A DNA stretch of 64,000 nucleotides from Asterias rubens. Its lineage: Eukaryota. Numbering within the stretch: the stretch's first letter is position 1; the number at the start of each line of letters is the position of its first letter. Location: the NCBI RefSeq assembly GCF_902459465.1, contig NC_047062.1:26040001-26104000 (forward strand), in the 5' to 3' direction. The notes beneath the pieces were generated by a model, which made no database searches, was not told the DNA's origin, and saw only the letters and a list, made by a program, of their open reading frames with translations. Shown piece after piece: positions 10,596-48,474 of the stretch. The translations under genes and the position numbers were made by a program.

Positions 10596-10655
10596 AAAGC
10601 GAAGCTATTTATAGGAGAAAAAAAAATTAAATACAAAAATAAATCGTACAAATTT

Positions 10656-19750: not shown

Positions 19751-19760
19751 GGGAATTCCC
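19751..19760 (+). promoter_or_regulatory. NF-kappaB consensus site GGGAATTCCC upstream of ISG12 gene 1 (duplicate at 24776-24785 for gene 2)
   Basis: Perfect palindromic GGGRNWYYCC match ~320 bp before the ATG, in a CpG-rich promoter-like stretch. Confidence 0.5.
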
Positions 19761-20079: not shown

Positions 20080-22762
20080 ATGTGGTGGGTAGAGAAACTT
20101 GAATCTGCAAACAAGCTCATACTTTTTCAAAATAACCGTCCAGTCCGAAATGAACATGATGTTTTAATTTTCATCGTGGCTGTCAGTGCATTGCAAGAGG
20201 ATGAAACTGGAAGAACTATAACGGTAGGTAAATACTATAGTATTATTTTTACTAGCCCCATAAATCGGTCCAATCCATGCCACAAGGCTACGGAGTGGAT
20301 TGGACCGATTTATGCACAAGGCTACGGGACCGATTTATGGGGCTAGGTATAATACATGAACCTCAAAACATTTCTTTAATTTTAAATAAATGATGGTCTT
20401 TGACTTCTGGGCCTTTGTGCATGTTCCGAGTTTATCTTTTGCACCACAATGTATATTGATGTTTGTGCAATAAAAAGAATAACGACTTCAGGCTACACTC
20501 AATTCTGTCCAAATCAAATTAGTAAATGTTCAAAGTTGTCTAGTTGCGATAACGTAACCCTCCTACCTATAGCGAGGGTTACGTTATCGCAACTAAAAGT
20601 TGTCCTGCTAATCATCTGTCTCCTCAGGTCAGTTTTGAAAACGGGTCGAGCCTACAGCTATCCCTGGATGATTTCAGTCAAAGAGACACCAGTTTGAAGG
20701 CAGATTTGAAGGCAATAAACTTTGTCAAGCAGTTTGCTAAGGAGTTTTCGGGCCAGTTACCAGCAGAAGAACAACCTAAAACTAAAAAAAGCGGTAAGCT
20801 TTTAAGTTTTATCCTATATCCAATTTCATTTGATAAAATTTCATTGTCACAACCAATGAATATTATGCCATATTCTGCATGAAACCTGTTTTTTTTTCTC
20901 AAATGTACTGAGGATCAAACTGTTTGATTGAGTATATCCCTGGTAATTTCTTGTCTGAACTGAAGAACTAAAGAAGGCTTGGACTTGAAACCTAATTTTG
21001 GTTCAACAATTCACAAGCTTTAAAACCTGATTATGGTTAGACCAGGTACTGAGATTTTAAACCTGCTTAGTTATCTTTTAATTCTAAGTAAAACTTTCAT
21101 CGTATACAACATGTAACCCTTTAGTGATCAAAAAGAAACATTGTACATTCCAGGGCCTTTTTGGCAGGCATGATAGTACTACACTTATCATTATGTAAAT
21201 TTGTTAATTTCATCTTCAATTCAAAAATTAGTTATAAAAGTAACGGCTGAATAGGTTTTAAAGATGTGCCCTTTTCTTCATATCAAACTTTGCTAAAAAT
21301 TAAACAGCACACTTTCCATGAACGAAGATAATTTATAAGATTTGTTGTTTTCATGAGTTTTTGGGATGCGAGGTGGCAGCAGACTTACCAGGTATATCTA
21401 TTGTTCTTTGTAATGTGAGCATTCTCAGATATGCGTAAACAATGAAAATTTACCTGGTAGGTCTGCTCTGCTGCCACCTAGTGCCCCAGAGTATCCCCCA
21501 TCCCTGAGTTGTGTACAAATTGTACCTGCACTCGCAGAGTCCAGGCTCTGTGGCTGTTTTGTGTGATGCCTATTACATGGTTGTAGTGGTTGTATTATTT
21601 TTATATTTTAGGCTATGGTGTGCGACATGTTGTAGCAGGGTGTGTTGTCGGAGTAGGTGCTGTTGCTGCAGCTCCATTTGTACTCACTGCTGTAGGATTT
21701 ACATCAGGTGGAATAGCAGCAGGATCCATTGCATCAGGCATGATGTCTTCTGCAGCAATTGCAAATGGTGGCGCTGTTGCAGCAGGAAGTGGAGTGGCTG
21801 TTCTGCAGTCAGTTGGAGCTGCAGGGTTAGGAGCTGCAGGTACTGCTGCAGTTGGTGGTGCTGGTGCAGCAGCTGGGGCTGGTGCTTCTGGTGTAGCAGG
21901 TTTCTTTCAGAATTACTTTAGAGGTAGGGTCATAGATTGGTTTTTGTCTGTCGAATCCATGTGATTGAGTACGCAATACAAATTTTGACGTTACAAATTC
22001 GCAGCGAATAATTCCCAACAGTTGAACTGTGTTCAACTCCTGCAAAACATTCGCTGGAAAATAGCCATGTGACGTCAAAATTTGTATTGTTTTCACATTT
22101 GCAGGAAGACATCCACATGAAAACATACTGATTAAAAATATTCAAGGCAGAGGACACTGTTGGTAATTACTCAAAATAATTTTTAGCATAAAACATACTT
22201 GGTAACAAGCAATGGAGAGCTGTTGATAGTATAAAACATTGTGAGAAACGGCTCCCTCTGAAGTATCATAGTTTTTGAGAAAGAAGTAATTTTCCACGAA
22301 TTTGACTTCAAGACCTCAGATTTAGGTTTTGAAGTCTCAGAATCAAGCATCTGGAAGCACACAACTAGTGTGACAAGGGTGTTTTTTCTTTCATTATTAT
22401 CGCGCAACATCGACGACCAATTGAGCTCAAACTTTCACAGGTTTGTTATTTTATGCATAGTTGAGAATACACCAAGTGAGAAGAATGGTCTTCGACAATT
22501 ACTAACCTGTATACCGCAGTTGAAACTAATTAACAGTGAGTTTTTAATATTTCTCCATAATTTCTCTCACAGATCCATTTCTTATTCTTTTCTTCTAGGA
22601 CGTGGAGACTCTACAACCGAGAACAAGACCTCCAATACAACACAGGAGGATGATGATTATGATAATAATGGTGATGGGGAAGATGGGGATGGGTGGGTAT
22701 TGGGGGAGGGGGGAGAGGGTATGGGGGGTTATGGTTATGATTGGGATGATGATAATGATTAG
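20080..22762 (+). CDS. IFI27-like: ISG12/IFI27-family protein 1 (exons 20080-20223, 20628-20793, 21612-21923, 22599-22762; 261 aa)
   Basis: Exon 3 encodes the ISG12 motif (VGFTSGGIAAGSIASGMMSSAAIANGGAVAAGSGVAVLQSVGAAG). All junctions are GT-AG with compatible phases 0/1/1, the total of 786 nt is in frame, and exons 1-2 are homologous to those of genes 4 and 5. Confidence 0.85.
20541..20595. repeat. Short ~55-bp hairpin interspersed element (relatives at about 24578, 25566, 29606, 34166 and 35122)
   Basis: 22-bp perfect stem tagttgcgataacgtaaccctc / gagggttacgttatcgcaacta. Confidence 0.7.
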
Positions 22763-25104
22763 ATAAAGATTGGATGGGGGGGGGGGGCGCTGATTGAGAT
22801 GATAATGATGATAATAATTGGCACCTGTAAATGGGTTGATCTTATAGTTATAAAATTACCCTAACCCTAACCCGCAGATTGTATCTAAAAGTACATCGAT
22901 CAGTTGTTATTTATGTGCACGACAACAAAATTAAGGACATTAGACTAAGTATCCCTCAATTGCATTAAAGACAATTGTTGGCAATAACCTTTGTCCGAAC
23001 GAAAAACCTATCCAGTCAAAAGATTCAACGAGTACTACATTTAATCTTTCAGAGGTTTATTTTACAATAAGGTCTCACATCAAAATCAATTGAATTGTGA
23101 GGTAGTGATGTATAACAACCGAAACAGTCACCTTTTGGTTGGCAGCTCTCCCTTCCTGCCTTGCATGTTAATATAGCCACAGTACAATGGAGGCTAAATA
23201 AAGATCTTTAATTCAATAGCAATTAGGCCTATTTTAAAACCCACCGGCTTTATGAAGAGTATTTTATCATTTTTTATTTGTTTAAGTTGTGCAAATGCGA
23301 GGTCCTACACGGGAAGTGACTTTAATTAAACGGTATGTGTTTCATGTAATGATATTAGATGACAGAGTTCCAATTGAGTACTGCTTATTGTACACTATCA
23401 TGATTGTATCTTGACAAGGTCCACACTGATGAAAAATCAGCAGAATTTTTCTGTCTGTGATTTGATGTAAGTGTAATACTAATAGAGAAAATTATCATTA
23501 TATCTGCAGTCAGCAAACAAGCTTGAGTAATAGGTATAATTTGACCCTCAATCTTATTATTTTGTTGTTTGCTGTTATTGAAAATAATAAAATAAGCCAC
23601 TTTTCTGTTAATAGTCATATAACGTGTTATAATTTTTGTTGAGAAAAATAAAAAGAAAAATGAAAAAGGTTATTTGAAGTCAAGTTATTATAAATAATAA
23701 ACATGTCTCCTTACCTTTAGTCACTTTGTGTCTTAGTATGGCGTGAAGTGTTAATCTTTCCGACACCTGAAAGAAAATTACAAACACTTAACAAGTGTTT
23801 CTGATAGTATCCTAACACTTCATGTGCTACTGAATGCTAGCAGACGACACTATTCTCAACGTTATTAGTTAAAACTATTTGTTGCCCTCTAGAGGGCTCT
23901 GTTGTACACAATTACAAAACCGGCTGGGTGTGTACTGCAGGCATAATATAGGTCGTTTAGCTCCCCCCCTGGGTCCACCCCGGTGTGTGGCGTGTTTTTT
24001 TTCCAGGACCAACGTGTGCAGATAATTACCCACGTTCGTCATGGAAAAAAAAACCGCCACACACCGGGGTTGACCCAGGGAAGCTAAACGAACGCAGTTA
24101 CTAATGTTACGCCAACTTCTGCGATTTTTGGGGGTTTCCCCATATACAGCGAACGTTTTTGTAATAAAGTGACTCATTTATTTGGTCGTTATTCAAGATG
24201 CTAAAACGAGTATGCAAACACGGTATCTCTGTGGCTCATAAACATCAGAAATGGTGTTTTATCATGGGTCAAAGAGACACCAGTTTAAAGTCGATAAACA
24301 TTGCCAAGCAGTTTGCTAAGGAGTTTTCGGGTCAGTTACCGGAAGAACCTGGGGCTCGGTTACCGGAAGAACCTAAAAGAGGTAAGCTTTTAAGTTTTAT
24401 CCTGTTATTATATCATTGGACAAATTTCATTGTCATAACCAATGAATGTTATTGTTATGCCAGAATCTGCATGAAACCTGTTTTTTCTGTAATGTACTGA
24501 TCGAGGATCAAACTGTTTCAAGTACGGTATATCCCTGGAATGTTTTTGTCCGAACTGAAGTTAAGACGTGAACTGTGATAGTTGCGATAACATAACCCTC
24601 CCCCGACGGCTTTGAAAGCAGAACGAAACTCATAGAGTAGTAGTACTAGTACTACACCCTTCTTTTTAGAAGCCCGGAATCAGACATAAATGAAAGATAC
24701 AGAAATTTAAACAAACAATATTGCGTGTGCACCGTCGTGTTGAAACCATGGAGCATTGTCAGGTGACGTGAACCCGGGAATTCCCTACAAAGATTATTTT
24801 CGGTAAACGCGCATCTGTCGAGCGCAATCTGTGTTAGTTGACGTTTTTTGAAATTTACGCACGGTAATTTTATTACATGCAAACACGAATACAAATCGCG
24901 CGCGCCCGCGCAAAATCAAAACAATATTGGCATTTTCGAAGATTGCGCCAATAGCTGGCGGGCGCAGCCATAAATAAGTTCATGCATTTAACGCAAACGT
25001 TATCGCAATTTAGCATGGGATGACACGTACGCTTAACTCCAGCAGGCAAAGGTCATATTATTATTGACCACTGTGAAACATAAGGTACCTGAGTTAAGAT
25101 CATC

Positions 25105-27793
25105 ATGTGGTGGGTAGAGAAACTTGAATCTGCAAACAAGCTCATACTTTTTCAAAATAACCGTCCAGTCCGAAATGAACATGATGTTTTAATTTTCATC
25201 GTGGCTGTCAGTGCATTGCAAGAGGATGAAACTGGAAGAAATATAACGGTAGGTAAATACTATAGTATTATTTTTACTAGCCCCATAAATCGGTCCAATC
25301 CATGCCACAAGGCTACGGAGTGGATTGGACCGATTTATGCACAAGGCTACGGGACCGATTTATGGGGCTAGGTATAATACATGAACCTCAAAACATTTCT
25401 TTAATTTTAAATAAATGATGGTCTTTGACTTCTGGGCCTTTGTGCATGTTCCGAGTTTATCTTTTGCACCACAATGTATATTGATGTTTGTGCAATAAAA
25501 AGAATAACGACTTCAGGCTACACTCAATTCTGTCCAAATCAAATTAGTAAATGTTCAAAGTTGTCTAGTTGCGATAACGTAACCCTCCTACCTATAGCGA
25601 GGGTTACGTTATCGCAACTAAAAGTTGTCCTGCTAATCATCTGTCTCCTCAGGTCAGTTTTGAAAACGGGTCGAGCCTACAGCTATCCCTGGATGATTTC
25701 AGTCAAAGAGACACCAGTTTGAAGGCAGATTTGAAGGCAATAAACTTTGTCAAGCAGTTTGCTAAGGAGTTTTCGGGCCAGTTACCAGCAGAAGAACAAC
25801 CTAAAACTAAAAAAAGCGGTAAGCTTTTAAGTTTTATCCTATATCCAATTTCATTTGATAAAATTTCATTGTCACAACCAATGAATATTATGCCATATTC
25901 TGCATGAAACCTGTTTTTTTTTCTCAAATGTACTGAGGATCAAACTGTTTGATTGAGTATATCCCTGGTAATTTCTTGTCTGAACTGAAGAACTAAAGAA
26001 GGCTTGGACTTGAAACCTAATTTTGGTTCAACAATTCACAAGCTTTAAAACCTGATTATGGTTAGACCAGGTACTGAGATTTTAAACCTGCTTAGTTATC
26101 TTTTAATTCTAAGTAAAACTTTCATCGTATACAACATGTAACCCTTTAGTGATCAAAAAGAAACATTGTACATTCCAGGGCCTTTTTGGCAGGCATGATA
26201 GTACTACACTTATCATTATGTAAATTTGTTAATTTCATCTTCAATTCAAAAATTAGTTATAAAAGTAACGGCTGAATAGGTTTTAAAGATGTGCCCTTTT
26301 CTTCATATCAAACTTTGCTAAAAATTAAACAGCACACTTTCCATGAACGAAGATAATTTATAAGATTTGTTGTTTTCATGAGGAGTTTTTGGGATGCGAG
26401 GTGGCAGCAGACTTACCAGGTATATCTATTGTTCTCTGTAATGTGAGCATTCTCAGATATGCGTAAACAATGAAAATTTACCTGGTAGGTCTGCTCTGCT
26501 GCCACCTAGTGCCCCAGAGTATCCCCCATCCCTGAGTTGTGTACAAATTGTACCTGCACTCGCAGAGTCCAGGCTCTGTGGCTGTTTTGTGTGATGCCTA
26601 TTACATGGTTGTAGTGGTTGTATTATTTTTATATTTTAGGCTATGGTGTGCGACATGTTGTAGCAGGGTGTGTTGTCGGAGTAGGTGCTGTTGCTGCAGC
26701 TCCATTTGTACTCACTGCTGTAGGATTTACATCAGGTGGAATAGCAGCAGGATCCATTGCATCAGGCATGATGTCTTCTGCAGCAATTGCAAATGGTGGC
26801 GCTGTTGCAGCAGGAAGTGGAGTGGCTGTTCTGCAGTCAGTTGGAGCTGCAGGGTTAGGAGCTGCAGGTACTGCTGCAGTTGGTGGTGCTGGTGCAGCAG
26901 CTGGGGCTGGTGCTTCTGGTGTAGCAGGTTTCTTTCAGAATTACTTTAGAGGTAGGGTCATAGATTGGTTATTGTCTGTCGAATCCATGTGATTGAGTAC
27001 GCAATACAAATTTTGACGTTACAAATTCGCAGCGAATAATTCCCAACAGTTGAACTGTGTTCAACTCCTGCAAAACATTCGCTGGAAAATAGCCATGTGA
27101 CGTCAAAATTTGTATTGTTTTCACATTTGCAGGAAGACATCCACATGAAAACATACTGATTAAAAATATTCAAGGCAGAGGACACTGTTGGTAATTACTC
27201 AAAATAAATTTTAGCATAAAACATACTTGGTAACAAGCAATGGAGAGCTGTTGATAGTATAAAACATTGTGAGAAACGGCTCCCTCTGAAGTATCATAGT
27301 TTTTGAGAAAGAAGTAATTTTCCACGAATTTGACTTCAAGACCTCAGATTTAGGTTTTGAAGTCTCAGAATCAAGCATCTGGAAGCACACAACTAGTGTG
27401 ACAAGGGTGTTTTTTCTTTCATTATTATCGCGCAACATCGACGACCAATTGAGCTCAAACTTTCACAGGTTTGTTATTTTATGCATAGTTGAGAATACAC
27501 CAAGTGAGAAGAATGGTCTTCGACAATTACTAACCTGTATACCGCAGTTGAAACTAATTAACAGTGAGTTTTTAATATTTCTCCATAATTTCTCTCACAG
27601 ATCCATTTCTTATTCTTTTCTTCTAGGACGTGGAGACTCTACAACCGAGAACAAGACCTCCAATACAACACAGGAGGATGATGATTATGATAATAATGGT
27701 GATGGGGAAGATGGGGATGGGTGGGTATTGGGGGAGGGGGAGAGGGTATGGGGGGTTATGGTTATGATTGGGATGATGATAATGATTAGATAA
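25105..27793 (+). CDS. IFI27-like: ISG12/IFI27-family protein 2 (exons 25105-25248, 25653-25818, 26640-26951, 27627-27793); tail shifted by a 1-G deletion
   Basis: Duplicate of gene 1. A G6 run is G5 near 27736-27740, changing the C-terminus to ...GEGERVWGVMVMIGMMIMIR*. Confidence 0.8.
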
Positions 27794-29158
27794 AGATTGG
27801 ATGGGGGGGGGGGGGCGCTGATTGAGATGATAATGATGATAATAATTGGCACCTGTAAATGGGTTGATCTTATAGTTATAAAATTACCCTAACCCTAACC
27901 CGCAGATTGTATCTAAAAGTACATCGATCAGTTGTTATTTATGTGCACGACAACAAAATTAAGGACATTAGACTAAGTATCCCTCAATTGCATTAAAGAC
28001 AATTGTTGGCAATAACCTTTGTCCGAACGAAAAACCTATCCAGTCAAAAGATTCAACGAGTACTACATTTAATCTTTCAGAGGTTTATTTTACAATAAGG
28101 TCTCACATCAAAATCAATTGAATTGTGAGGTAGTGATGTATAACAACCGAAACAGTCACCTTTTGGTTGGCAGCTCTCCCTTCCTGCCTTGCATGTTAAT
28201 ATAGCCACAGTACAATGGAGGCTAAATAAAGATCTTTAATTCAATAGCAATTAGGCCTATTTTAAAACCCACCGGCTTTATGAAGAGTATTTTATCTTTT
28301 TTTATTTGTTTAAGTTGTGCAAATGCGAGGTCCTACACGGGAAGTGACTTTAATTAAACGGTATGTGTTTCATGTAATGATATTAGATGACAGAGTTCCA
28401 ATTGAGTACTGCTTATTGTACACTATCATGATTGTATCTTGACAAGGTCCACACTGATGAAAAATCAGCAGAATTTTTCTGTCTGTGATTTGATGTAAGT
28501 GTAATACTAATAGAGAAAATTATCATTATATCTGCAGTCAGCAAACAAGCTTGAGTAATAGGTATAATTTGACCCTCAATCTTATTATTTTGTTGTTTGC
28601 TGTTATTGAAAATAATAAAATAAGCCACTTTTCTGTTAATAGTCATATAACGTGTTATAATTTTTGTTGAGAAAAATAAAAAGAAAAATGAAAAAGGTTA
28701 TTTGAAGTCAAGTTATTATAAATAATAAACATGTCTCCTTACCTTTAGTCACTTTGTGTCTTAGTATGGCGTGAAGTGTTAATCTTTCCGACACCTGAAA
28801 GAAAATTACAAACACTTAACAAGTGTTTCTGATAGTACCCTAACACTTCATGTGCTACTGAATGCTAGCAGACGACACTATTCTCAACGTTATTAGTTAA
28901 AACTATTTGTTGCCCTCTAGAGGGCTCTGTTGTACACAATTACAAAACCGGCTGGGTGTGTACTGCAGGCATAATATAGGTCGTTTAGCTCCCCCCCTGG
29001 GTCCACCCCGGTGTGTGGCGTGTTTTTTTTCCAGGACCAACGTGTGCAGATAATTACCCACGTTCGTCATGGAAAAAAAAACCGCCACACACCGGGGTTG
29101 ACCCAGGGAAGCTAAACGAACGCAGTTACTAATGTTACGCCAACTTCTGCGATTTTTG

Positions 29159-29168
29159 GGGGTTTCCC
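29159..29168 (+). promoter_or_regulatory. NF-kappaB consensus site GGGGTTTCCC upstream of the gene 3 chimeric exon (duplicate at 24131-24140)
   Basis: GGGRNWYYCC match ending 57 nt before the ATG at 29226. Confidence 0.35.
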
Positions 29169-29225
29169 CATATACAGCGAACGTTTTTGTAATAAAGTGA
29201 CTCGTTTATTTGGTCGTTATTCAAG

Positions 29226-30990
29226 ATGCTAAAACGAGTATGCAAACACGGTATCTCTGTGGCTCATAAACATCAGAAATGGTGTTTTATCATGGGTCAA
29301 AGAGACACCAGTTTAAAGTCGATAAACATTGCCAAGCAGTTTGCTAAGGAGTTTTCGGGTCAGTTACCGGAAGAACCTGGGGCTCGGTTACCGGAAGAAC
29401 CTAAAAGAGGTAAGCTTTTAAGTTTTATCCTGTTATTATATCATTGGACAAATTTCATTGTCATAACCAATGAATGTTATTGTTATGCCAGAATCTGCAT
29501 GAAACCTGTTTTTTCTGTAATGTACTGATCGAGGATCAAACTGTTTCAAGTACGGTATATCCCTGGAATGTTTTTGTCCGAACTGAAGTTAAGACGTGAA
29601 CTGTGATAGTTGCGATAACATAACCCTCCCCCGACGGCTTTGAAAGCAGAACGAAACTCATAGAGTAGTAGTACTAGTACTACACCCTGTACACTGATCA
29701 TTATTATTATATGAATTCTTTTAAATTTCATCTTCAATTCAAAAGCGATTAGTAATGTAATGCCCCTTTCTTCATATTAAATTTGCTAAAAATCAAACTG
29801 CGCACTTTCCATGATTGAACATAAGATTTTTTTATTGTTTTTTTCAATTTGTACCCAACTCAGGGAGTGGCAGCAGAGCAGCTCTACCAGGTAAATTTTT
29901 ATCGTTTACGCATAGATTTACCTGGTAAGTCTGCTGCCACCTAGCGTCCCGAAAGCCCGGCAGCCCAGCTATATTGACGGGCTGCTGGGCTTTTGGTACG
30001 CGAGGTGGCAGCAGACTAAATCTATGCGTAAACAATGAAAATTTACCTGGTAGGTCTGCTCTGCTGCCACTCCCACTCCCTGAGTTGTGTACAACTTGTG
30101 CCTGCACTGTACGGTAAGTCCAGGCTCTGTGGCTGGTTTAACATGTGATGCCTATTATTCTACATGGTTGTAGTGGTTGTATTATTTTAATACTTTAGGC
30201 TACTGTGTGCGACATGTTGTAGCAGGGTGTGTTGTTGGAGTAGGTGCTGTTGCTGCAACTCCATTTGTACTCACTGCTGTAGGATTTACATCAGGTGGAA
30301 TAGCAGCAGGATCCATTGCAGCATGCATGATGTCTTCTGCAGCAATTGCAAATGGTGGCGCTATTGCAGCAGGAAGTACAGTGGCTGTTCTGCAGTCAGT
30401 TGGAGCTGCAGGGTTAGGAGCTGCAGGTACCGCTGCAGTTGGTGGTGCTGGTGCAGCAGCTGGGGCTGCTGCTTCTGGTGTAGCAGGTTTCTTTCAGAAT
30501 TACTTTCGAGGTAGGGTCATAGATTGGTTATTGTCTGTCGAATCCATCCACATTAAAGCCTGGTTCATACTTCATGTGAATAAGCATGATACGAATTATG
30601 ATGTCCCAAATCCGCAACAAATAATTTCCAACATTTGAACTATGCAAAACATTCACTGCGAAAACAGCCATGTGACAAACCAATTGTATTCATATTCTCA
30701 TGAAAACAAAATTATTTAAAAAACATTAAGACATGGCTATTGTAACCTACCTTACCTCAGTAGAAAAATGACAACAAAAAACACAAACAAACTTAACTTC
30801 GTTCGTTTCATTTAAACAGTGAGTTTTTAATACTTGTCCATCATTTCTGTCACAGATTCATTTCTTATTCTTTTCTCCTACAGTCAAGAAAAAGACATCC
30901 AATACAACACAGGATGAAAATAATGATGATGATGAGGCTGATGATGATGATGGGGAAGGTGGGAAGGATGGGGGAGGGGGGAGAGGGTAG
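29226..30990 (+). CDS. IFI27-like: ISG12/IFI27-family protein 3 with putative chimeric first exon (29226-29409, 30199-30510, 30884-30990)
   Basis: Intact ISG12 exon and acidic terminal exon (VKKKTSNTTQDENNDDDEADDDDGEGGKDGGGGRG*). Only the 3' half of exon 2 is present, fused in frame to an upstream ATG and ending at the conserved phase-1 donor. Confidence 0.65.
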
Positions 30991-35840: not shown

Positions 35841-38732
35841 ATTGGAACAAGCATCTTATTCAACCCTTGGGATGCATCGGTCCCTGCACACAACAGTGGT
35901 TGAGGAGGAGATATTGAAGTTCCGTAGACTGTCTGAATCTTGGTGGGATGAGAATGGTGCATTCCAGGCATTACACAGCCTCAACGATATACGCATACCA
36001 CTCATTAGAGATGGTCTGGTCAGAAAAGGTCAAGGGTCAGGTCAAACTTTAGCCAGGCCACAACCACTCACTGACTCTGTCATCTTGGATGTTGGATGTG
36101 GAGGAGGAATTCTTTCAGAGGTGAGTTTTGTCGAGTAATATTTGGCACCCCCATACCCTCTCACACTCGGCTATATTTGCCATTGAGTTGATAATGTAGT
36201 CAATTGCAAGGGTTGTTTATATGGTGGTGCAAATGCATTAACCACATGATTGCTTATTGCAGGCTGGCATAGTGCACCTATCATTCCAAACCATATCGGA
36301 TGATATTAAATGGTCATACAGTAGGAGGGGTGACCGTAATGTGGAGATGCATTCACCACATGATTGCATATTGCTTGCTGGCATAGTCAATCAATCATTG
36401 TGAAAGCCTCTGTGACTGGCCCAGACTAGACTATGCTTGACACTTAATCCTCAATGACAGGCTTTGCTCTGAGGACAATTTACCTGTCATCTAGCATCCT
36501 TAAAAGTTTCCCATTATCAAGATGTAACTATTCAAAACTCTATTGACTAATATTTGCAGCCATTGGCCAGGTTAGGAGCAAGAGTGACTGGTATTGATGC
36601 TGCATTGGAGAACATTGAAGTGGCTCAACAACATGCTTCTCATGATCCTCTGTTACACAGAGGACTGAGGTATATGTGTATAACAGCAGAGGAACTATTA
36701 GAGACAGAGAGAGGTGTGTTTGATGCAGTTGTTGCGTCTGAGGTGCTGGAACATGTTAGTGATGTAGAGGGGCTGGTAGCGACGTGTTCACAGTTGACTA
36801 AGGTTTGTTCAGTTTTAAAATTACACAGTCACTCAAGGCACAGCAATTTTTTCTGGTTAAAGGTACTTCTATAAGGAAGATTTAAATTTGTATGGGACTT
36901 TGCAAATGACACCACATCAAAAGTATGGCATTTGCTGTGAGTGCTGTGGGTTATGTCGAGGACTGGTCACTGGGTGTGAGGGTAGAAGATTTGAACAAGT
37001 GTGGGAGGGTTGGCAACTGCATTAAGACCATAAGGGTTTTGCATTTTGCTATTGTATCACAACCATTGTAGTTTAACTCAATGCATTGCTTATTTAACAG
37101 CCTGGAGGTTCGATATTCTTCACCACTATTAACAAGACGTGGCTGTCCTATGCTTTAGCAGTAATTGGGGCTGAGGACATAGCGAGGGTTGTACCACATG
37201 GCACTCATGACTGGACTAAGTTTATCCCTCCAGATGATTTGCAGAGGTTTCTTGAAGCAAGTGAGTATATTCTTCTTATACCCTTTTACTATCCCTAAAC
37301 TCTCCTTACCACAAAATACCACAGGAGACTGTGGAGACTAACTAGTCCACAGTACACCAAGCCACAGGGTATCCCGTAATATCAGCTGTACAAATAGGAG
37401 AAACCTATGCATCCCCAGGCCTGGAATTTCATCTTTAAGTGGGCAAGGCCATGGCATTGAAATATCTTAAAAGTGTAAGGGAAACTTTTGATGGGACACT
37501 ACAGCCTACACCAGGGGCAACGTACAGAGGCCATGACCTCTGTGGTCTCCGTCTGGCACCAAGTGTATTTTGTGCCAGTCTGTCTGTACACAAAACAAAC
37601 CCTTGTACCTAGTGCTAGCCTGGATGGTATGGTACTTTGTGCCAGTCACTGTCTGTTGTACTCAGACACAAAACAAACCCTTGTACCTAGTGCTAGCCTG
37701 GATGGTATGGTACTTTGTGCCAGTCACTGTCTGTTGTACTCAGACACAAAACAAACCCTTGTACCTAGTGCTAGCCTGGATGGTATGGTACTTTGTGCCA
37801 GTCACTGTCTGTTGTACTCAGACACAAAACAAACCCTTGTACCTAGTGCTAGCCTGGATGGTATGGTACTTTGTGCCAGTCACTGTCTGTTGTACTCAGA
37901 CACAAAACAAACCCTTGTACCTAGTGCTAGCCTGGATGGTATGGTACTTTGTGCCAGTCACTGTCTGTTGTACTCAGACACAAAACAAACCCTTGTACCT
38001 AGTGCTAGCCTGGATGGTATGGTACTTTGTGCCAGTCACTGTCTGTTGTACTCAGACACAAAACAAACCCTTGTACCTAGTGCTAGCCTGGATGGTATGG
38101 TACTTTGTGCCAGTCACTGTCTGTTGTACTCAGACACAAAACAAACCCTTGTACCTAGTGCTAGTCTGGATGGTATGGTATTTTGTGCCAGTCACTGTCT
38201 GTTGTACTCGTACACAGAAGAAACCCATGCACCCAATGCTAGCCTGGATGGTATGGTACTTGTGCCAGTCACTGTCTGTTGTACTCGTACACAGAAGAAA
38301 CCCATGCACCCAATGCTAGCCTGGATGGTGTGGTATTTTGTGGTATGCTGTGGTACCTGTGTATAGAAGGGTTAGTTGAAAACTAAAACACTGATATTTA
38401 GAAGAGAAAATTCTTACACATCCTCTAGTTTCAGTTAACACGCCACATTTTGATGATTCCTCCACATTATATGGTTATGTTAGGTGCAAACAATGAAAAC
38501 CAGTTTCTTGTTTTGTCAGAGATTTCTTGACATTCCTATGGCACTTTATTTTGAATGTTTGTTTTTATCAACAGATGACTGTAACATGAGATTAGTGCAT
38601 GGGATGATTTTGAATCCAATCACAATGCGCTGGTCATGGGGGTCTCCCAAGGCATGTAACTATGCCATCCATGCTATCAAGAATGATAGATCACAAACGG
38701 ACTTTGATGAAATTGAGGAAACACAAAGTTGA
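35841..38732 (+). CDS. COQ3: Ubiquinone biosynthesis O-methyltransferase COQ3 (exons ~35841-36120, 36560-36802, 37101-37260, 38575-38732; N-terminal exon(s) and exact first acceptor unresolved)
   Basis: WWDENGAFQALHSLNDIRIPLIR, SAM motif ILDVGCGGGILSE|PLARLGARVTGID, FDAVVASEVLEHV, PGGSIFFTTINKT, GTHDWTKF, LNP...W.W...NY; GT-AG junctions with phases 0/0/1. Confidence 0.95.
37570..38340. repeat. 78-bp intronic minisatellite (~10 copies) in the last COQ3 intron
   Basis: tgtgccagtcactgtctgttgtactcagacacaaaacaaacccttgtacctagtgctagcctggatggtatggtactt repeated, with the last two copies diverged. Confidence 0.95.
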
Positions 38733-40907: not shown

Positions 40908-40986
40908 CTAGACTTGTGGAGCAGTGATCTCGCGAGACCACTATCTCAGCGCGTGGGCCGATTTAACGACTTGTCCACAAGTCTAG
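40908..40986. mobile_element. Internally deleted relative of the 102-360 MITE
   Basis: ctagacttgtgga...cttgtccacaagtctag; flanks cgagcac / cgagcaa. Confidence 0.65.
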
Positions 40987-41138
40987 CGAGCAATAGGAAA
41001 GGGCATAGTGTCTACAGTTGTTTGTTTATTGATTTCTGTCCTTAATAACGAAGGGACGAAAATTACTGATTAACGCGCTCAACAGATTTCAGCACGAGAC
41101 TTCTTCTAATATTTCTCACGAGTGGAATTTCTCACAAG

Positions 41139-41148
41139 GGGATTTCCC
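41139..41148 (+). promoter_or_regulatory. NF-kappaB consensus site GGGATTTCCC upstream of ISG12 gene 4
   Basis: Perfect consensus ~95 bp before the ATG at 41242, preceded by atttctcacaa as in gene 5. Confidence 0.55.
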
Positions 41149-41241
41149 TTTTTAGATGCATAATAGCAGGTGTGCAGCGTGCTTTGTCATTGTGGTGTGA
41201 TCAGTTCTTTTCCTTCGTCCATGAGTTAATAAACGCAGGAC

Positions 41242-44200
41242 ATGATGGTGAAACTTGAAACGAAGGGCAAGCTCATTCTCATTTTACTCATCCTGAGCAT
41301 TACTAATACTAGTGCAAGAAGACGGGTAGGTCTAAAGAAACTTACTTTTGTTATGAATATGATCCATTTCAAGTAGCCCACCTTGTTGAGCTGTTAATGG
41401 CTCCGCTTTTAACATTGGTCTCATCACTGTCGCCGACAGTGATGACTGTTGCCGACAGTGATAATTTATAAGTATCATGTAATTTAGTTCTACCTGCTGT
41501 AGTTATATATGGTGGCCCTGAAGGGACATTAAACATATATATTTACGTGAATATTTACGTAAATATATGATGGATTTTGCCCTAAATCGGAAATATTCAC
41601 GTCAATATTCACGTCAATATTTGCGAATTCTGACCATACGCAAATATTTACGTAAATACGTCAATATTCACGTGAATATTTAAGATTGGGGCACAAATCG
41701 TGAATATTTACGTTAATATTTGCGAATTGGCCACAAACCGTGAATATTTACGTAAATATTTACATGAATATATTTTTGCGATTAAGGGCAAAATCCATAA
41801 ATATTTACGTAAATATTCACATAAATATATATGTTCAATGTCCCTTCAGGGCCACCAAAACAATTATATAGTGCCTTATGCATGGCCTCAAAATGCTTTA
41901 CAATAATATAAAAATCAGCAAACAATACAAAGATACAAATAGAAAACACTCATAAAATCGCATAATAGGCAGATAAGCAAAATACAACCAACAAAATAAA
42001 TAGGAGTTATTTAAAATGAGCCGATAAAACACAATAACAATTGTCATAAAAAAAGTCCCTCCGCTCTATGGCTGTAAAATTTACACTGCTAACATTCTAT
42101 AGACAAAATTCCTGACAAAATGTCTATGGAAATTTAAAATCCCAATAAGTAAATTTAGTTTCTTTTACTTTTTCAGGGGAGGCACAGGGAAGAAAGTGAT
42201 GGTATGTATATCCTAATGTATATGGACAAATATTAATTGTCTTGGGTAATGAATATTCATACATCACTTTAGATGAAATTATTGTTCGTTATTTATTATT
42301 AATTAATTAATTTATTGTTATTCTTAGGGAACTGTCTGGCTATATTCTACTGCCGCAGAGTAGATAATCGGAGGTTCGGGAGACTTCTCAGTTCTGAAAA
42401 GAACTGTCCTGCTTTTTAACTATTACCAGGATGGATTTTCTATACCATCCGCCCTGTTAAAAAGCAGGACAGTTCGTTTCAGAACTGGGAAGTCTCCCGA
42501 ACCTCCGATTATCTACTCCGCGGCAGTAGAATATAGCAAGACAGTTCCCTAAGAACAACTCTACCTGGCAAGTAGATACACACATGGTGTTACCGCAATC
42601 CAAGTACACATTGATACCTCACCATGCAATGCCTCAAATCCTATATAATTTATTGTTATTATTATCTATTTATATATATTATATACAGTCAAGTTAATAC
42701 TAATTGCGATAATCGTAACCCTCATACTCCATAAGGTCAAATAATATAATAATTTGGGGGGCTAATCATCCTTACTCGCAGCTAAGAGCTGAATTGCGAA
42801 GGACGCGGCTACAACGTGTTCGAGAAGCAGACATGCAAGGGCGCATTCAGCTGCCAGCCACATCAACCCATTATGACCACGGAGCACAGCCAAGATCGAA
42901 AGTGTTTGATTTTTTCCTGAGGGAGGAAAACCGGATAGTCTGGAAAACCCTCGTGGCACAGCAGAGAACTCACTGCAATTTCTAGTCACCAGACTTCCCA
43001 AATTTATACCCCTCCTTTTCAGGACACCATGTGACACATTCGGCCAATCACACAAACAAGCGGCGCAACCTGACCATTGTGCCTGTTACAAATCCGCATG
43101 CATATTAATGAGCATCATGCATATGTTACAGATGGGCTTTCTCTCCCCCTTATCCTGTTCCTTTTGTTATGACATATTTGTTGGTCTTTAAGAACATCTG
43201 TGGTATTTGGCAAAACAGGTCAGTCTGTTTCACAATGTGTATTGTTAGATGTTATGCAACGGTCATAATGTAACATTGTGTCCTTAATGTGTTGACACTC
43301 CAAACTTATTATTAAGGTGCAGTGGACACAATGTTTAGTATAATTGCCCACTGCATTGTGTGATGTTTCTAGCCTATAAAATACTGGGTATGCCTCTTGC
43401 TGGGTTACACTCATCACTCCGCCACCACTGAGTCAGCCAGGGGCTCTGCCCAACTCATACATTGATGGGTGTCACCGCTTCAACCATCGGCCACACCATT
43501 GTCCAGTATTGGTGTTTCAGCCATATTCCAGTTACAGAGACAGTCAGTCACAACTGTGCTCTTTCTCCTTCAAGTTGATGGCTTGAACCAACCGGTTCTT
43601 GCACAGAGACAGTCAGCCAAAACTGTGCTCTTTCTCCTTCAAGTTGATGGCTTGAACCACCCGGTTCTTGCGCTCCGATGGCCTAAAACCCACGCCCGGT
43701 TTTGAGGCTCTTCCTAGATGGCCTAAAACCCACGCCCGGTTTTGAGGCTCTTCCTAGATGGCCTAAACCCATGCCAGGTTTGAGGCTCTCCCTAGATGTA
43801 CCAATCTAGTGCCAGACGTCAGTTTAGAAGAGGCACCGTGTAACCAGCACATCGAACCCAGTCATCAAACTTCCGGTAGCTATAATCTTAGGGTCTCTCA
43901 TTTGAATTGTATTAAATCTGCCATGTGCATTATTAATGGTTCTATTGCTTTAAATATTGTTGTTTGAGTAAATTAAATTATCATCGTGAATATAATCGCT
44001 GGTTAGGTTTCACTCTTTCTTGTCAAATGTCTCTGTCGTGCCTTAGTTCCTTTTTGACATTGTAATGAATTAGGCGCACGTAACACATACAACAGCGGTT
44101 TGGTGTCTGCTGATTGGTCGAGATTTGCTATATACCGGGCGGTTAGAACTTGGCTAGAATCCTTTTTTTTTAAGTAAAAATTTCTGATTTTGGTAAATTT

Positions 44201-44695
44201 ACCTCTAGATCTAGTAAGTTTGCCTTTAAAAAGTTGTGTTATACCCACCCAATGGTATCAGAGGAAATGTGAAAACAGCAACCTCTTCAAAAACACTAAT
44301 CACACACAGTACATGTTAGTTGATTTCCAGTCTACCATGCCACCCTTAGGGAATTTAATAATATTGTGTTCTATATTCCAGGCTTCTCTTTAGGTGGTCT
44401 CCTAGCAATGGGTTTATTCGGAATAGGTGCTGTAGTCGCAGCTCCAGTTGTACTCGCAGGTGCAGGATTTACAGCGGGTGGAATAGCAGCAGGATCCATT
44501 GCATCAGGCATGATGTCTACTGCAGCAATTGCAAATGGTGGCGCTATTGCAGCAGGAAGTACAGTGGCTGTTCTGCAGTCAGTTGGAGCTGCAGGGTTAG
44601 GAGCTGCAGGTGCTGCTGCAGTTGGTAGTGCTGGTGCAGCAGTAGGGGCTGCTGCTGTTGCTGCAATCAACCAAGATGAGGATGAGGATGAATGA
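41242..44695 (+). CDS. IFI27-like: ISG12/IFI27-family protein 4 (exons 41242-41325, 42177-42201, 44382-44695; ~140 aa)
   Basis: MMVKLETKGKLILILLILSITNTSARRR|GRHREESD|GFSLGGLLAMG...ISG12 motif...NQDEDEDE*; canonical splice sites with phases 0/1. Confidence 0.85.
41511..41856. mobile_element. Foldback element with ~12-bp internal subrepeats in intron 1 of ISG12 gene 4
   Basis: TIR ggtggccctgaagggacatt / aatgtcccttcagggccacc; interior made of atatttacgtga/aatattcacgt repeats. Confidence 0.75.
42317..42559. repeat. Long inverted repeat (~110-bp arms) in intron 2 of ISG12 gene 4
   Basis: cttagggaactgtc..gctatattctactgccgc..gagtagataatcggaggttcgggagacttc and its near-perfect reverse complement. 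Confidence 0.8.
43124..44085. mobile_element. Solo LTR (962 bp, 4-bp TSD; Gypsy-type inferred) in intron 2 of ISG12 gene 4
   Basis: TGTTAC...GTAACA termini with a cata direct repeat (43120-43123, 44086-44089); internal ~72-bp x2 and ~41-bp x3 tandem repeats. Confidence 0.75.
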
Positions 44696-46850
44696 TTCGG
44701 ATTAAATGAAAGCAAACTGTGTTTGTTTTTACTTAAGTAAGAATTTCTAGTAGATTTAAGGAACTTTCATTTTCAGTACAGTAGACTTTTGGCCAATGAA
44801 TCAATGCTTAGCTTTCGCAGCATAAACTTTTAAAAGAGAAAGTGTAAAGAAAAGCTTATTAAATTTGATTAAAGCCCATGGGCAACATTGTTAACTACCA
44901 ATGACCAGTATCGGCATTTAATTTTAATGTGACCCAAGTCACAAAACATAGTTACATTGAATAACTAATCATTATTTTATTAGCCATAGAGTTAACCCTA
45001 ACCAAGTTACATTTCACTCAAACAGCAGATTTTACTCCCCGTTTCAACTAATGTTGAATTGCTTATAAATGAAATATGCTGCACCTGACTAATAGATTGC
45101 TTTAGTTTGATTAATTTCATAATCTGAACTTAGAAGATTTCTAAAATCTTCACATGTGATCTGATTTATAAGGATGACTGTGAATTTTTAATGCATTTGT
45201 TTCAGACTTTGTGTTTGGCATTTGTGGTTTGTCTCTTTCAATGATTCTGTGCTAGATTTCAGTATAAACTTAAAGGAAAGGTAAACGTTTGGGAATCACT
45301 CGTTTGGCAATTTAATTATTGGCAATAAAAACTGTTGGTTAAAAGCCTACAGGGGTTTACGGTTAGTATAAAGCATTCTGAGAGACATTTCACTTCTAAG
45401 ATGTGGTTAATAAAATTTATCAGTTTTTAATCTCAAAAATAAAAATCTGAGAAGCGTTATTGCAGTAACACTCCTCAGTTTGGGTGAAGCGTTATTGCAA
45501 TAAGACTCCTCAGTTTGGGTGTTATTGTTTGGGATTATTCTTCCCGATTTAGATTTTCGGCGATATCTTGTACATTTTGAGCTTTGGTTTTTCCTTTAAG
45601 AATGACAAAGATCTACCTGGGTGTTATATAAAACAAAAAAATACGTCTTTTGTATTCTTACAATGGAGAGAATATTTAATTCGATGAAAGGTGGAATGTT
45701 CCATTCAACTCGACTTCACCTCATTGGTTTGAACATTCCATCATTCAATAACTTAATTCTCATCATTGCACGAATGCAAACAATCGTTATTTGTTAAAGT
45801 GAACACTTTAGATAATGCGTAATAAAAAGAAATCAAAATATAGTGGCTGCTTATAGATTTATGAAATACTGGAACACTTCAATAAAAATAGACGTAAATT
45901 GTTTCTCAACTAAAACTTGCATCCGAGTTTATTTTGTGTTCCCGATGAGTCCGTACCGTGGTGTGAAGTTACATCGCATTTGATTTGACAAAAGTTTTGA
46001 TGTTTCACTGTTTTCTCCTTTCCGACGAATGTTCAACCAATCATAGCGAAGTTGATACACAGTGAAGAATAATTATAGCGGGAAATCCCCACCTACCCCA
46101 GTTATTTAGGTAACGAATTAGGGCATCTCTACGTGCTGCGATGTTTATTGGAAGTGTGTCTAGGACTCTGCGTTGTGGTGTAGATTCCAATTGATACAAA
46201 TACATGTTAACTTTTAACCCCTGTATATTGCCCCATCAACAGTCCAGTAGCTTAAATATTGGACCTTAGAACAACCTCCCTGATTGATTATTGACTACTC
46301 ACTGTACCAAGGCCAAGGTGTATGCCTTGCCCTTGACCCAAGTGCATTACCTTGTCCTTCCTACCACATGTCATCACCTGGGTTAAAAGCCCATGGACAT
46401 TCTTCTGGTCTTAGGTTTATGATGGCTCTTAAATTGGAAAGCCTGACCCAAAATACTTATTAGTTTCTTCCCTCACTCTATTTCCAACCACCAAACGAGA
46501 CACATGTCTCTGTGCTTCCACTAGTGTATACTATTGCTTACTAAAATTATTCCATTGCTTAATAAAGCCTATCGTAAGATCAGTATGTGTGTGATTCCAT
46601 ATTATTCCGTCAACAACTAACTCCCAAAGTGGGTTAGTATTTTGAAAAACATATTTTCCAACGAGTCTTTAGCAACTAAGCAATCACTGCAAGTATAATA
46701 GGCTTTGCTCTATAAATAACAACTTCAAAGAAAACCTGTGGATTATTAGTAGCTACTGTCAATTTATATATCATCATATTCTCTTTATTTCAACCCTGAA
46801 ACTATTATACGCAAAGCCCCTTTAAGTTTAAAGTCATTATTTCTCACAAC

Positions 46851-46861
46851 GGGGAACTCCC
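46851..46861 (-). promoter_or_regulatory. NF-kappaB consensus site (GGGAGTTCCC on minus) upstream of ISG12 gene 5
   Basis: atttctcacaacggggaactccc ~70 bp before the ATG at 46929, positionally matching the gene 4 site. Confidence 0.5.
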
Positions 46862-46928
46862 GCCAGTGTTTTTTTTTTTTACTATGCGCAGGCGCAGATC
46901 GCTGGAGGTGTACGCAGTGGACGTTAAA

Positions 46929-48474
46929 ATGGCTAAACTTGATGCAAAAACCAAGCTCATTTTTATTTTATTCTTCATGAATATTACTTACTGTAATAAC
47001 GCCAGTGAGCCACCTGATTGTGGAAGGAGACAGGTAAAAGAAATGACTTTAAATCGTTGTAATCTTTGCAGAAAATGGTACGGTTGCATATGCGATATCA
47101 TTAGATAATTGTATGCATTATCAGACAATTGATACTCAGTAACTTGGGCGCTAGATTCCTGTTTTTTTCCCGAAATTTAACCGATAATCGACAGATGACC
47201 GATAATGTCAAAATTTCGAAAAAAGGGAATCCAGCGCCCCTAAGTGGGTCTAGATATGGATGTTAATCAGTGTAAAAAAACCTGGGAATTCGCTCCGGGA
47301 TCTGGTAAGTTTTTGTTCCTTTTTCTCCAAAAATATTTTCTCAATGGTGTTTTGAGTGTTCATTATAGACATTGAGGATTAAGTTCGTGCCCTTAGAATT
47401 TGTGTCATGATTTTTGAAAGTGGTAAAAATTGGGCAAATCTGGTGACCAGCTGTCGAAATTATACGTGTTGGACCAGATTGTCATATTTGCCGCCCGAGA
47501 GAATCTCAGCTGGTAGAGCACTGCCAAGTTAATCCAGAGGTCGTTGGTTCAGATCTCGCTCTAGTAAATCTTTCTATCAACCCCCAAATCATAACAAACC
47601 CAGTCAATTTCCCCTTGTGGATTATTTGTCTAACAGGTCAGTTTTGAGGATGATGTCAGTTATGAGGATAAGGTCACCCATCCTGGAACTGAAACAAGTA
47701 AGTAATTTGTGTAAACATGAGACAAACCCCTGGCATTTGTTAAAATGATTTGACATCACGACAAACCCAAATAGATCCTCACTAAAAGTCACCAAAGACC
47801 TGCAGCTAGAGTAGTGCTTGGCCCATACTTGGAAACACCTTTCCACTTTTAACCCTCATTGATGGCTGCATGGAGTTTATCGCTCAGTGAGCATTTATTT
47901 AGTTTTTTTTAAATTGATGTCATGCAAAATGTGTAATCAAAATCTGCTTTATAAAGTAAGTTTTTAAACTGGGTAATGGTTTGCATTAAAAATTATGTAA
48001 AAAGTGATGCCCAATCGAAATCATCATTGGAAAGGTGGGAAGAACACAACAGCCTTTTCAAAAACACTTATTATCACACAGAGCACTTATAACTTGATTT
48101 CCAAGTCATCCATGCAAGCCTAAAACAGTTTAATTTCTTTTGTTTTTATTCCAGGATCTTTGGACGGTTTCCTAGCAATGGGTTTTTGCGGATTACTTGC
48201 TGTAGTCGCAGCTCCAGTAATACTCCCTGCTGTAGGATTTACATCAGGTGGAATAGCAGCACCATCCATTGCATCAGGCATGATGTCTACTGCAGCAATT
48301 GCAAAATGGTGGCGCTATTGCAGCAGGAAGTACAGTGGCTGTTCTGCAGTCAGTTGGAGCTGCAGGGTTAGGAGCTGCAGGTACTGCTGCAGCTGGTGGT
48401 GCTGGTGCCTTAGTAGGGGCTGCTGTTTCAGAAGCATTCTAGAGGATGAATGGTACTGTATCTTGGCTGAATAG
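46929..48474 (+). pseudogene. IFI27-like: ISG12/IFI27-family gene 5, frameshifted (exons 46929-47033, 47637-47697, 48155-48442/48474)
   Basis: MAKLDAKTKLIFILFFMNITYCNNA...|VSFEDD...|RSLDGFLAMG...; gcaaaatggt at 48301-48310 has one extra A relative to gcaaatggt in all four paralogs; the ancestral frame stops at 48440-48442. Confidence 0.7.

Follow-up and report, generated by a model that had tools for sequence, protein, structure and literature searches.

How did a cluster of ISG12 (IFI6/IFI27) genes arise and diversify in a sea star, and what might drive its expression there? In vertebrates, ISG12 genes are among the most strongly interferon-induced genes, and their biochemical mechanism is still unclear. 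Echinoderms are, to our knowledge, deuterostomes without interferons. We analyzed a 64-kb window of the Asterias rubens genome (approximately positions 26,040,001-26,104,000 of record LR699092.1, assembly GCA_902459465.3), which holds five ISG12 genes, numbered here 1 to 5, together with COQ3, the gene for ubiquinone O-methyltransferase. All positions given below are those of the window, which contains zero N; two separately fetched loci (L001 and L003) were equal to it base for base. We consider it likely that the cluster evolved through tandem segmental duplication, exon capture and gene conversion, and propose that it may supply one membrane module to several cellular sites under the control of Rel/NF-kappaB in the way explained below.

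Several elements of this picture have precedents. The ISG12 motif of the vertebrate family spans ~80 aa and is rich in small-xxx-small patterns (PMC5578005). IFI6 is a protein of the endoplasmic reticulum (ER) and IFI27 is mitochondrial (PMC5578005; bioRxiv 10.1101/693333), and zebrafish possesses eight isg12 genes in tandem (bioRxiv 10.1101/693333). In shrimp, LvIFI6-16 consists of a signal peptide and an Ifi-6-16 domain; it is induced by white spot syndrome virus (WSSV) and regulated by STAT and IRF, and its knock-down raises the viral load (PMC9144789). Further, IFI27 transcripts are known in oyster (PMC4892480). ISG12 in invertebrates, tandem arrays and multi-domain forms are therefore already known.

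Five ISG12 Exons on the Two Sides of COQ3

When the open reading frames (ORFs) of the window were searched using hmmscan, the Pfam domain PF06140 (Ifi-6-16, ISG12) was detected on five ORFs, all on the + strand. Copies 1-4 scored 84.6-89.4 bits against a curated cut-off of 29.1 (E-values of 1.9e-24, 1.9e-24, 1.4e-25 and 4.5e-24, respectively), and copy 5 appeared as two half-domain matches in different frames (2.3e-11 and 2.6e-09; 43.9 and 37.3 bits). A tblastn search of the window with sea-star ISG12 proteins revealed no sixth copy. The spacings of the five exons, as determined by a repeat finder, were 5028, 3559, 14183 and 3770/3771 nt, and the mismatch of one base in the last of these indicates an indel in copy 5. 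An initial annotation, made from the letters of the window, had described a five-gene cluster whose members share the ISG12 exon and had proposed a Pfam search as a check. The search recovered all five exons, the fifth split by a frameshift, but the array is interrupted by COQ3, so that the paralogs form two groups, one on each side of it. NCBI annotation already includes the five genes, with gene 2 mis-modelled as 'partial' and gene 5 read through its frameshift (Table 1).

The nearest proteins were 'IFI27-like' models of Asterias, Patiria and Acanthaster. Each of the intact products possesses 23-27 small-xxx-small-xxx-small (glycine-zipper) motifs, and their hydrophobic segments (Kyte-Doolittle >=1.5) fall inside the ISG12 domain. 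The long forms, with 200-261 aa, do not fit the description of the ISG12 family as 'small' proteins. By sequence, the membership of the cluster in the ISG12 family (IFI6/IFI27, Pfam Ifi-6-16) is secure.

Table 1. Genes, duplicated units and kappaB-like sites of the window (positions in nucleotides of the window).
Feature	Position	Strand	Details
Gene 1, long form, 261 aa	20080..22762	+	Exons 20080-20223, 20628-20793, 21612-21923, 22599-22762
Gene 2, tandem near-copy of gene 1	25105..27793	+	Exons 25105-25248, 25653-25818, 26640-26951, 27627-27793
Gene 3, 200 aa	29226..30990	+	Exons 29226-29409 (chimeric first exon), 30199-30510 (ISG12), 30884-30990 (different acidic tail)
Gene 4, short form, 140 aa	41242..44695	+	Exons 41242-41325 (leader), 43219-43243 (micro-exon), 44382-44695 (ISG12 and short acidic end)
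Gene 5, short form	46929..48474	+	Exons 46929-47033 (leader), 47637-47697, 48155-48442
Two tandem units of ~5,028 bp	19664-24660 and 24689-29688		99.70% identical over 5,001 aligned bases
Extra chimeric first exon, between genes 1 and 2	24198..24381	+	tblastn-identical to the first exon of gene 3
COQ3 (ubiquinone O-methyltransferase)	32902..~38700	+	Methyltransf_11, 1.8e-13; E. coli UbiG structures, 2.4e-08; NCBI gene of 325 aa starting at 32902
kappaB-like palindrome GGGAATTCCC	19751..19760		329 bp upstream of gene 1 ATG; twin at 24776-24785 for gene 2
kappaB-like GGGGGTTTCCC	29158..29168		67-68 bp upstream of gene 3 ATG; twin at 24130-24140 for the extra chimeric exon
kappaB-like GGGGATTTCCC	41138..41148		~100 bp upstream of gene 4 ATG, after TTTCTCACAA
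kappaB-like GGGGAACTCCC	46851..46861		77-78 bp upstream of gene 5 ATG

Tandem Duplication and the Chimeric Start of Gene 3

Genes 1 and 2 lie in two tandem units, each of which contains one long-form gene and one chimeric COQ3/ISG12 exon. The units differ by 10 substitutions and 3 indels, including a T/N coding change in exon 1. The expectation that duplication is lineage-specific and active was supported by comparison with Asterias amurensis (CP134965.1), which possesses a single counterpart of both units (~93% identity) and, upstream of its long form, an extra ISG12 gene of 209 aa (L004, 6209-8639) that supplies its fifth ISG12 exon and has no counterpart in the window. Opposite this extra gene, A. 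rubens has repeat arrays at 9001-19664. Two tandem long-form genes are present in Patiria and two tandem short-form genes in the sea urchin Lytechinus. Judged from the alignments, the duplication that gave genes 1 and 2 took place in the A. rubens lineage, unless one of the two genes is an artefact of the assembly.

The first exon of gene 3 has two sources. Its codons 1-24 (MLKRVCKHGISVAHKHQKWCFIMG) and ~47 bp of 5' flank copy exon 1 of COQ3, and from 29298 onward it consists of the 3' part of ISG12 exon 2 (QRDTSLK...). The extra exon between genes 1 and 2 is built likewise: the COQ3-like stretch 24151-24269 is 91% identical to 32856-32976, and at 24269|24270, which equals 29297|29298 in gene 3, homology to COQ3 exon 1 gives way to homology to ISG12 exon 2. 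Further, the region from the tail of gene 1 to the chimeric exon is collinear with the interval from the tail of gene 3 to COQ3, and both parents are intact beside the junction in the expected order, with an ISG12 gene upstream and COQ3 downstream. In these alignments the start of gene 3 reads as the product of a single tandem duplication whose breakpoints lay within ISG12 exon 2 and COQ3 exon 1. The same chimeric gene is present in A. amurensis (P0003 and a 206-aa model), which indicates that the fusion predates the split of the two species.

Like chimeric genes described at the junctions of tandem duplications, gene 3 shows a clean junction between the 5' end of a downstream gene and the interior of an upstream gene, with both parents intact. 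In contrast to such chimeras, the captured piece is short, comprising promoter-proximal DNA and 24 codons, and its contribution is probably to targeting and regulation, without a domain of its own. The peptide gained in this way is basic, lacks acidic residues and derives from a mitochondrial enzyme; that its 24 residues may act as a mitochondrial presequence is a reasonable guess. The extra chimeric exon has a phase that fits the ISG12 exon at 26640 and might therefore serve gene 2 as an alternative first exon.

Gene Conversion Within the ISG12 Exon

Nine Asterias ISG12 exons from A. rubens and A. amurensis were aligned for conversion analysis. Paralog-specific sites were found only in the first ~66 and the last ~50 alignment columns, and the central ~190 columns were near-identical in all copies, silent positions included. 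At one whole codon, all four A. rubens paralog types read ATT (Ile), whereas their four A. amurensis orthologues read TAC (Tyr). Since this three-base change is common to paralogs spread over 28 kb across COQ3, gene conversion is the sole route by which they could have come to share it. Other sites of the exon showed mosaic patterns consistent with conversion tracts. The alignment thus indicates that gene conversion homogenises the ISG12 core across the paralogs.

Between the two species, non-synonymous differences in the ISG12 exon exceeded synonymous ones (the ratio of their proportions, pN/pS, was 1.4-6.2 per pair and ~1.8 when pooled; one base of the A-run of gene 5 was skipped for codon counting only). 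Positive selection is not claimed from these ratios, as the counts are small and, through conversion, non-independent.

Interchangeable Leaders and Tails

All upstream modules of the cluster have a phase-1 end. In genes 1-3 the ISG12 exon, 312 nt long, is symmetric (1-1), so that one module can be exchanged for another without disturbing the frame. The constant core, the phase-1 modules and the symmetric ISG12 exon agree with the earlier proposal that the diversity of the family lies in swappable N- and C-terminal exons. To call the architectures 'atypically extended', as the same proposal did, was an overstatement, because the long form is present in Asterias, Acanthaster and Patiria and many invertebrate ISG12 proteins carry N-terminal additions of 80-150 aa.

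The leaders of genes 4 (MMVKLETKGKLILILLILSITNTS...) and 5 (MAKLDAKTKLIFILFFMNITYC...) are signal-peptide-like, comparable with that of shrimp LvIFI6-16 (PMC9144789), and contain N-glycosylation sequons (NTS; NIT and NAS, for genes 4 and 5, respectively). The tails of genes 1-3 contain motifs at 22599-22640, 27627-27668 and 30884-30910, respectively, and those of genes 1 and 2 open with an RGD motif at the exon junction (FRG|RGDS). The sequons of the tails, NKT and NTT in genes 1 and 2 and NTT alone in gene 3, are kept in A. amurensis. For these sequons and the RGD motif to have a role, the tail would need to be exposed to the lumen or the outside.

Gene Structures and Transcript Evidence

Gene 1 has an intact translation with GT/AG at all junctions and equals the 261-aa gene of NCBI. 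Its four exons contribute 48, 55, 104 and 54 aa: the first two encode an N-terminal beta domain and a charged linker, and the Asp/Gly-rich tail exon ends in ...DWDDDND. The gene is collinear with A. amurensis P0002 and with L007, a cDNA-like NCBI contig from another sea star. L007 (1,969 nt, intron-free, 83-85% identical) contains an uninterrupted ORF of 294 aa; its alignment follows exon 1, exon 2, the ISG12 exon and the 3' untranslated region (UTR) in order and breaks at the predicted junctions.

The exons of gene 2 are those of gene 1 shifted by 5025-5028 nt. In its tail exon, G5 replaces the G6 of gene 1 (~27736), such that the last ~18 codons are out of frame and the product, of 262 aa, has a hydrophobic end in place of the acidic ...GYGYDWDDDND. 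The initial annotation had assigned 261 aa, a 55-aa charged exon and a 54-aa Asp/Gly-rich exon to genes 1 and 2 alike, which is correct for gene 1 but does not hold for the tail and total length of gene 2. The NCBI model of gene 2 (P0001, 24301-28357) is a 'partial' product of 231 aa with misjoined exons. In this model the extra chimeric exon is spliced to exon 2 in the wrong frame, and the tail exon is left at ~27721 for a small exon at 28316-28354 (CANARSYTGSDFN); same-species RNA contigs span 27773-28334 without its last splice.

Contigs from four runs presumed to be RNA (X1-X4) were placed on 25050-31049. X1 and X2, whose listed pieces show few mismatches or none, come from the same species, and X3 and X4 are from a relative that is a few percent diverged from the window. 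The joint of exon 1 to exon 2 of gene 2 (25248>25653) was observed in X3 and X4, and that of exon 2 to the ISG12 exon (25818>26640) in X1 and X2. Together with the collinearity of L007, these joints support the splicing of flanking exons to the ISG12 exon, a check that the earlier reading of the locus had called for. X3 and X4 further contained a skip of 675 nt, the same length as the last intron (26951>27627), placed 6 nt off the predicted boundaries. Contiguous RNA contigs covered the 3' UTR of gene 2 to at least 28639. At 26714 and 26777, in the ISG12 exon of gene 2, nearly all of the same-species RNA contig depth carried G and A, where the reference has A and T; these differences represent either expressed alleles or a differing paralog elsewhere.

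Gene 3 agreed with the NCBI gene of 200 aa and with its A. amurensis counterpart, in line with the chimeric start and the different acidic tail first assigned to it. RNA contigs covered its chimeric exon from 29204/29252 to 29407 and then ran on unaligned, as expected at a donor site. Little RNA was found for the tail exon (zero depth in X1, X2 and X4 and ~6 in X3; part of the exon was skipped as low-complexity), and some RNA contigs extended into the intron past the ISG12 exon.

The model of gene 4 matched the NCBI gene in length and limits. We infer that the micro-exon belongs to this gene: it has 25 nt and a weak GTTAGA donor, and restores the frame. Direct splicing of the leader to the ISG12 exon was ruled out, since the two phases are incompatible (0 vs 1) and the reading runs into a stop. 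A TATA-like proximal promoter at 44128 was also considered, but there was no need to invoke it. The leader exon is 75% identical in DNA to that of gene 5, and the last exon was present in X1 and X2 at 0.64-0.67 of the sampled words.

In gene 5, the ISG12 exon has A4 at 48303-48306 where the other copies have A3, and half of the domain is in frame. As assembled, its ORF runs to 48474 and encodes 161 aa with a Cys/Trp/Arg-rich out-of-frame end; the NCBI gene LOC117299321 (P0153, 161 aa) is this frameshifted product. The orthologue in A. amurensis, P0015, is intact (150 aa). Genes 4 and 5 had been described as short genes with a hydrophobic leader; both leader exons are present, but the frameshift in the domain of gene 5 had been overlooked.

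The frameshifts in the tail of gene 2 and the core of gene 5 represent either recent mutations that inactivate the copies or errors of the assembly. Gene 5, perhaps together with gene 2, might be a young pseudogene or truncated allele, with genes 1, 3 and 4 as the functional set. Both frameshifts are present in the reference, the ISG12 exon of gene 5 is 88.8% identical to its orthologue as compared with 94.2% in the surrounding non-coding DNA, and some of the replacements in gene 5 are unusual, for example G>P within the conserved GGIAAGS motif. In contrast, the downstream frame of gene 5 is open as far as the conserved SEAF stop, conversion might repeatedly overwrite this copy, and an assembly error remains an alternative source of the extra A. 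We regard loss of these genes as a real possibility, though not the probable one, and prefer to treat the cluster as a set of five duplicated and converted genes.

A Beta Domain at the N-Terminus of Genes 1 and 2

Exon 1 and the start of exon 2 of the long form encode a domain of ~90 aa that is conserved in A. amurensis, Acanthaster planci and Patiria miniata, with M1, W2, IL, PVR and F..G....L.L.D.S invariant. When 1.84 billion representative sequences were searched with its profile, and P0123, the window's own exon-1 read-through ORF, was set aside, only three other proteins matched over the full length: a Patiria model, an Acanthaster model and L007, all of which are ISG12 proteins by Pfam. 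Within the reach of this search, no organisms other than sea stars have the beta domain of genes 1 and 2.

AlphaFold2 modelled the domain as five strands and a helix, with a mean predicted local distance difference test score (pLDDT) of 78.7 and a predicted template modelling score (pTM) of 0.66. In the model of the full-length protein it retained a pLDDT of ~74-88. Comparison with Pfam yielded neither PH nor any other family, only sub-threshold matches to C5orf34_C and DUF2442. The top 50 structures found by VIA-align were nearly all PH-superfold domains, but the best Z was 5.0, too low to assign a fold. In hhalign, the probability of a relation to the Lingula PH domain was 0.1%. From the predicted model, the fold is possibly PH-like, although the PH superfold is a sandwich of seven strands with a helix as its C-terminal cap and the model shows five clear strands. 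Two other candidates were rejected: bacterial Rib/aRib repeats gave short-motif matches only, which we attribute to a shared beta-hairpin motif (V..DGs..V.F.DGt), and a likeness to Tudor/chromo domains was indicated only by protein-atlas features of ~0.5, below a useful level.

KappaB-Like Motifs in the Promoters

The window was searched for the kappaB pattern GGGRNNYYCC and compared with 100 shuffles. There were 29 matches at 12 loci against 5.8 expected, and the largest number in any shuffle was 14. Six of the loci are in ISG12 promoters, one ahead of each first exon at a distance of 67-329 bp. These promoters are of four independent types (genes 1/2, the chimeric exon, gene 4 and gene 5). 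The sites of genes 4 and 5 have a common context, TTTCTCACAA(C)GGGGA..TCCC. KappaB-like sites are present at the same places in A. amurensis, that of gene 1 at 316 bp upstream. The promoter of COQ3, the parent of the gene 3 promoter, contains no kappaB-like motif in either Asterias species. The remaining decamers, away from first exons, are at 936-945, 8150-8160, 34804-34813, 38638-38648, 46080-46090 and 62931-62940; one of these off-promoter sites is ~850 bp upstream of gene 5.

The interferon-stimulated response element (ISRE)-like pattern GAAANNGAAAS occurred 4 times in the window (2.3 expected), each time outside the ISG12 promoters. No IRF-type GAAA..GAAA was found within 400 bp upstream of any first exon. 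In the same 400 bp, the STAT-type sequence TTCNNNGAA occurred as one palindrome, ~200 bp upstream of gene 5. A role for ISRE, IRF or STAT motifs in these promoters was set aside, because the motifs are unenriched and, save for the palindrome of gene 5, lie outside the promoters. Such elements, with induction by interferon, characterize the regulation of the vertebrate genes and do not define the protein family.

Proposed Mechanism and Alternatives

In the mechanism that we propose, one membrane module would reach different membranes, or take up different orientations, according to which of the three kinds of N-terminus it carries. The beta domain of genes 1 and 2 would be on the cytosolic side, the basic COQ3-derived presequence would direct the product of gene 3 to mitochondria, and the leaders of genes 4 and 5 would direct theirs to the ER and the secretory pathway. 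There, the module would alter the behaviour of organelle membranes and apoptosis, as vertebrate IFI6 (ER) and IFI27 (mitochondria) do, and Rel/NF-kappaB, rather than an interferon-ISRE axis, would drive expression. An interferon-independent immune-effector role, as put forward in the earlier proposal, is a plausible hypothesis in view of the kappaB-like sites, the promoters free of ISRE and IRF motifs and the analogy with shrimp LvIFI6-16. In its most specific form, in which a single converted module is placed at three sites through phase-1 exons (PH-like domain, COQ3 presequence and signal peptide) under a common Rel/NF-kappaB logic, we consider the scheme improbable as a whole; if true, the cluster would show how ISG12 was regulated and diversified before interferons.

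Several observations weigh against the mechanism. The searched literature gave no data on induction, localisation or function of echinoderm ISG12/IFI27. The four helices drawn for the ISG12 region in the full-length AlphaFold2 model have a pLDDT of 30-37, which makes the membrane topology a guess, and the 24 COQ3 residues may be too few for mitochondrial import. Foldseek searches with the beta domain (PDB, AFDB clusters, Atlas) gave no match at E <= 0.001, with all TM-scores below 0.5. The tail exon of gene 3 and the micro-exon of gene 4 are without an RNA sighting. Further, A. amurensis is only ~6-7% diverged, so that conservation of the kappaB-like sites in that species is weak evidence; Patiria has a sole site (GGGGAATTCCC), 1.1 kb upstream of one gene, and the ISG12 genes of Lytechinus have none.

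A second alternative is that the products are housekeeping or stress proteins of organelle membranes with no dedicated immune role, that 'ISG12' is here just a name taken over from the vertebrate family, and that the kappaB-like decamers are incidental or bound by other factors. It would account for transcripts in ordinary RNA libraries of the species and its relative, made under no known challenge, for promoters devoid of ISRE and IRF motifs, for the inconsistent kappaB sites of Patiria and Lytechinus, and for family members in oomycetes (Saprolegnia matches), which suggest a function older than animal immunity. In contrast, a kappaB-like site within 330 bp in four independent promoter types is far above chance, copies turn over rapidly with the pooled pN/pS at ~1.8 (from small counts and inflated by conversion), and the shrimp homologue is antiviral (PMC9144789). 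We consider this alternative unlikely.

Less probable still is a mis-assembled haplotype as the source of the 5-kb duplicate, with homopolymer errors as the frameshifts and four intact genes in the true haplotype: the units are 99.7% identical, both defects lie in homopolymers (G6/G5 and A3/A4) and among Logan RNA contigs there is none for the frameshifted product of 161 aa, but the 10 substitutions and 3 indels, the coding T/N change among them, are as in real paralogs or alleles and both units are in the NCBI annotation.

On the preferred reading of duplication, exon capture and conversion, one 30-kb locus exemplifies the birth of a gene at a duplication junction, concerted evolution of part of an exon and turnover of copy number between sister species. 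With one core, three targeting modules and kappaB-like promoters, the cluster would offer a tractable comparison for ISG12 function and for its wiring before interferon. Nothing established is overturned by it.

Relation to Known ISG12 Systems

The vertebrate ISG12/FAM14 family (IFI6, IFI27, IFI27L1/L2) resembles the starfish cluster in the common Ifi-6-16 domain, in consisting of membrane proteins and in its tandem arrays, and it includes signal-peptide/ER and mitochondrial forms such as those predicted for the starfish. In contrast to the vertebrate genes, the starfish promoters carry kappaB-like sites and lack ISRE and IRF motifs, with one STAT-type palindrome at gene 5. Further, three of the five starfish copies have long N-terminal additions (the beta domain or the COQ3 start), and the long copies have acidic C-terminal tails that are absent from vertebrate members.

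Shrimp LvIFI6-16, the only invertebrate member with functional data, resembles genes 4 and 5 in having a signal peptide followed by Ifi-6-16. Unlike the starfish genes, it is described as a single gene that depends on JAK/STAT, and no beta-domain or chimeric form is reported. A Lingula protein with PH and Ifi-6-16 domains (the PH confirmed by Pfam) is similar to genes 1 and 2 in that a cytosolic-type domain precedes the ISG12 module, although the sea-star beta domain has no sequence relation to the Lingula PH domain and the structural Z is at most 5.0. Precomputed Pfam matches indicate a similar architectural logic, RING and Ifi-6-16, in a crustacean (Homarus); in two Penaeus ISG12 proteins our own Pfam scan gave RING matches below threshold only. 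In the searched literature we found no description of the sea-star N-terminal domain, the COQ3-chimeric gene, exon-limited concerted evolution or the common kappaB-like motif.

Repeats Around the Genes

An intron of COQ3 contains, at 37510-38355, a near-perfect tandem repeat of 78 bp in ~ten copies, which gives rise to spurious + strand ORFs of 249-292 aa. The array is shared with A. amurensis, where the alignment can be shifted to many different registers.

The intron between the ISG12 exon and the tail of gene 2 contains a repeat of ~400 bp (27050-27649), with a twin in gene 1 (~22020-22620). Further copies are at 5154-5546, 31322-31736 (inverted), 50489-50855 and 55465-55806. The RNA-contig word depth of this repeat was enormous in each of the four runs, up to 2.5 million, and ragged joints numbered in the hundreds; the repeat resembles an abundant, transcribed family of short interspersed nuclear elements (SINE) or other transposable elements.

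A palindromic element (...GGTGGCAGCAGACTTACCAGGTA...TACCTGGTAGGTCTGCTCTGCTGCCAC...) resembling miniature inverted-repeat transposable elements was detected at 21380-21500, 26410-26530 and 29860-30090. In each of genes 1-3 it precedes the ISG12 exon by ~100 bp, and a double copy is present in gene 3, where the region 29850-30049 showed a very high RNA word depth.

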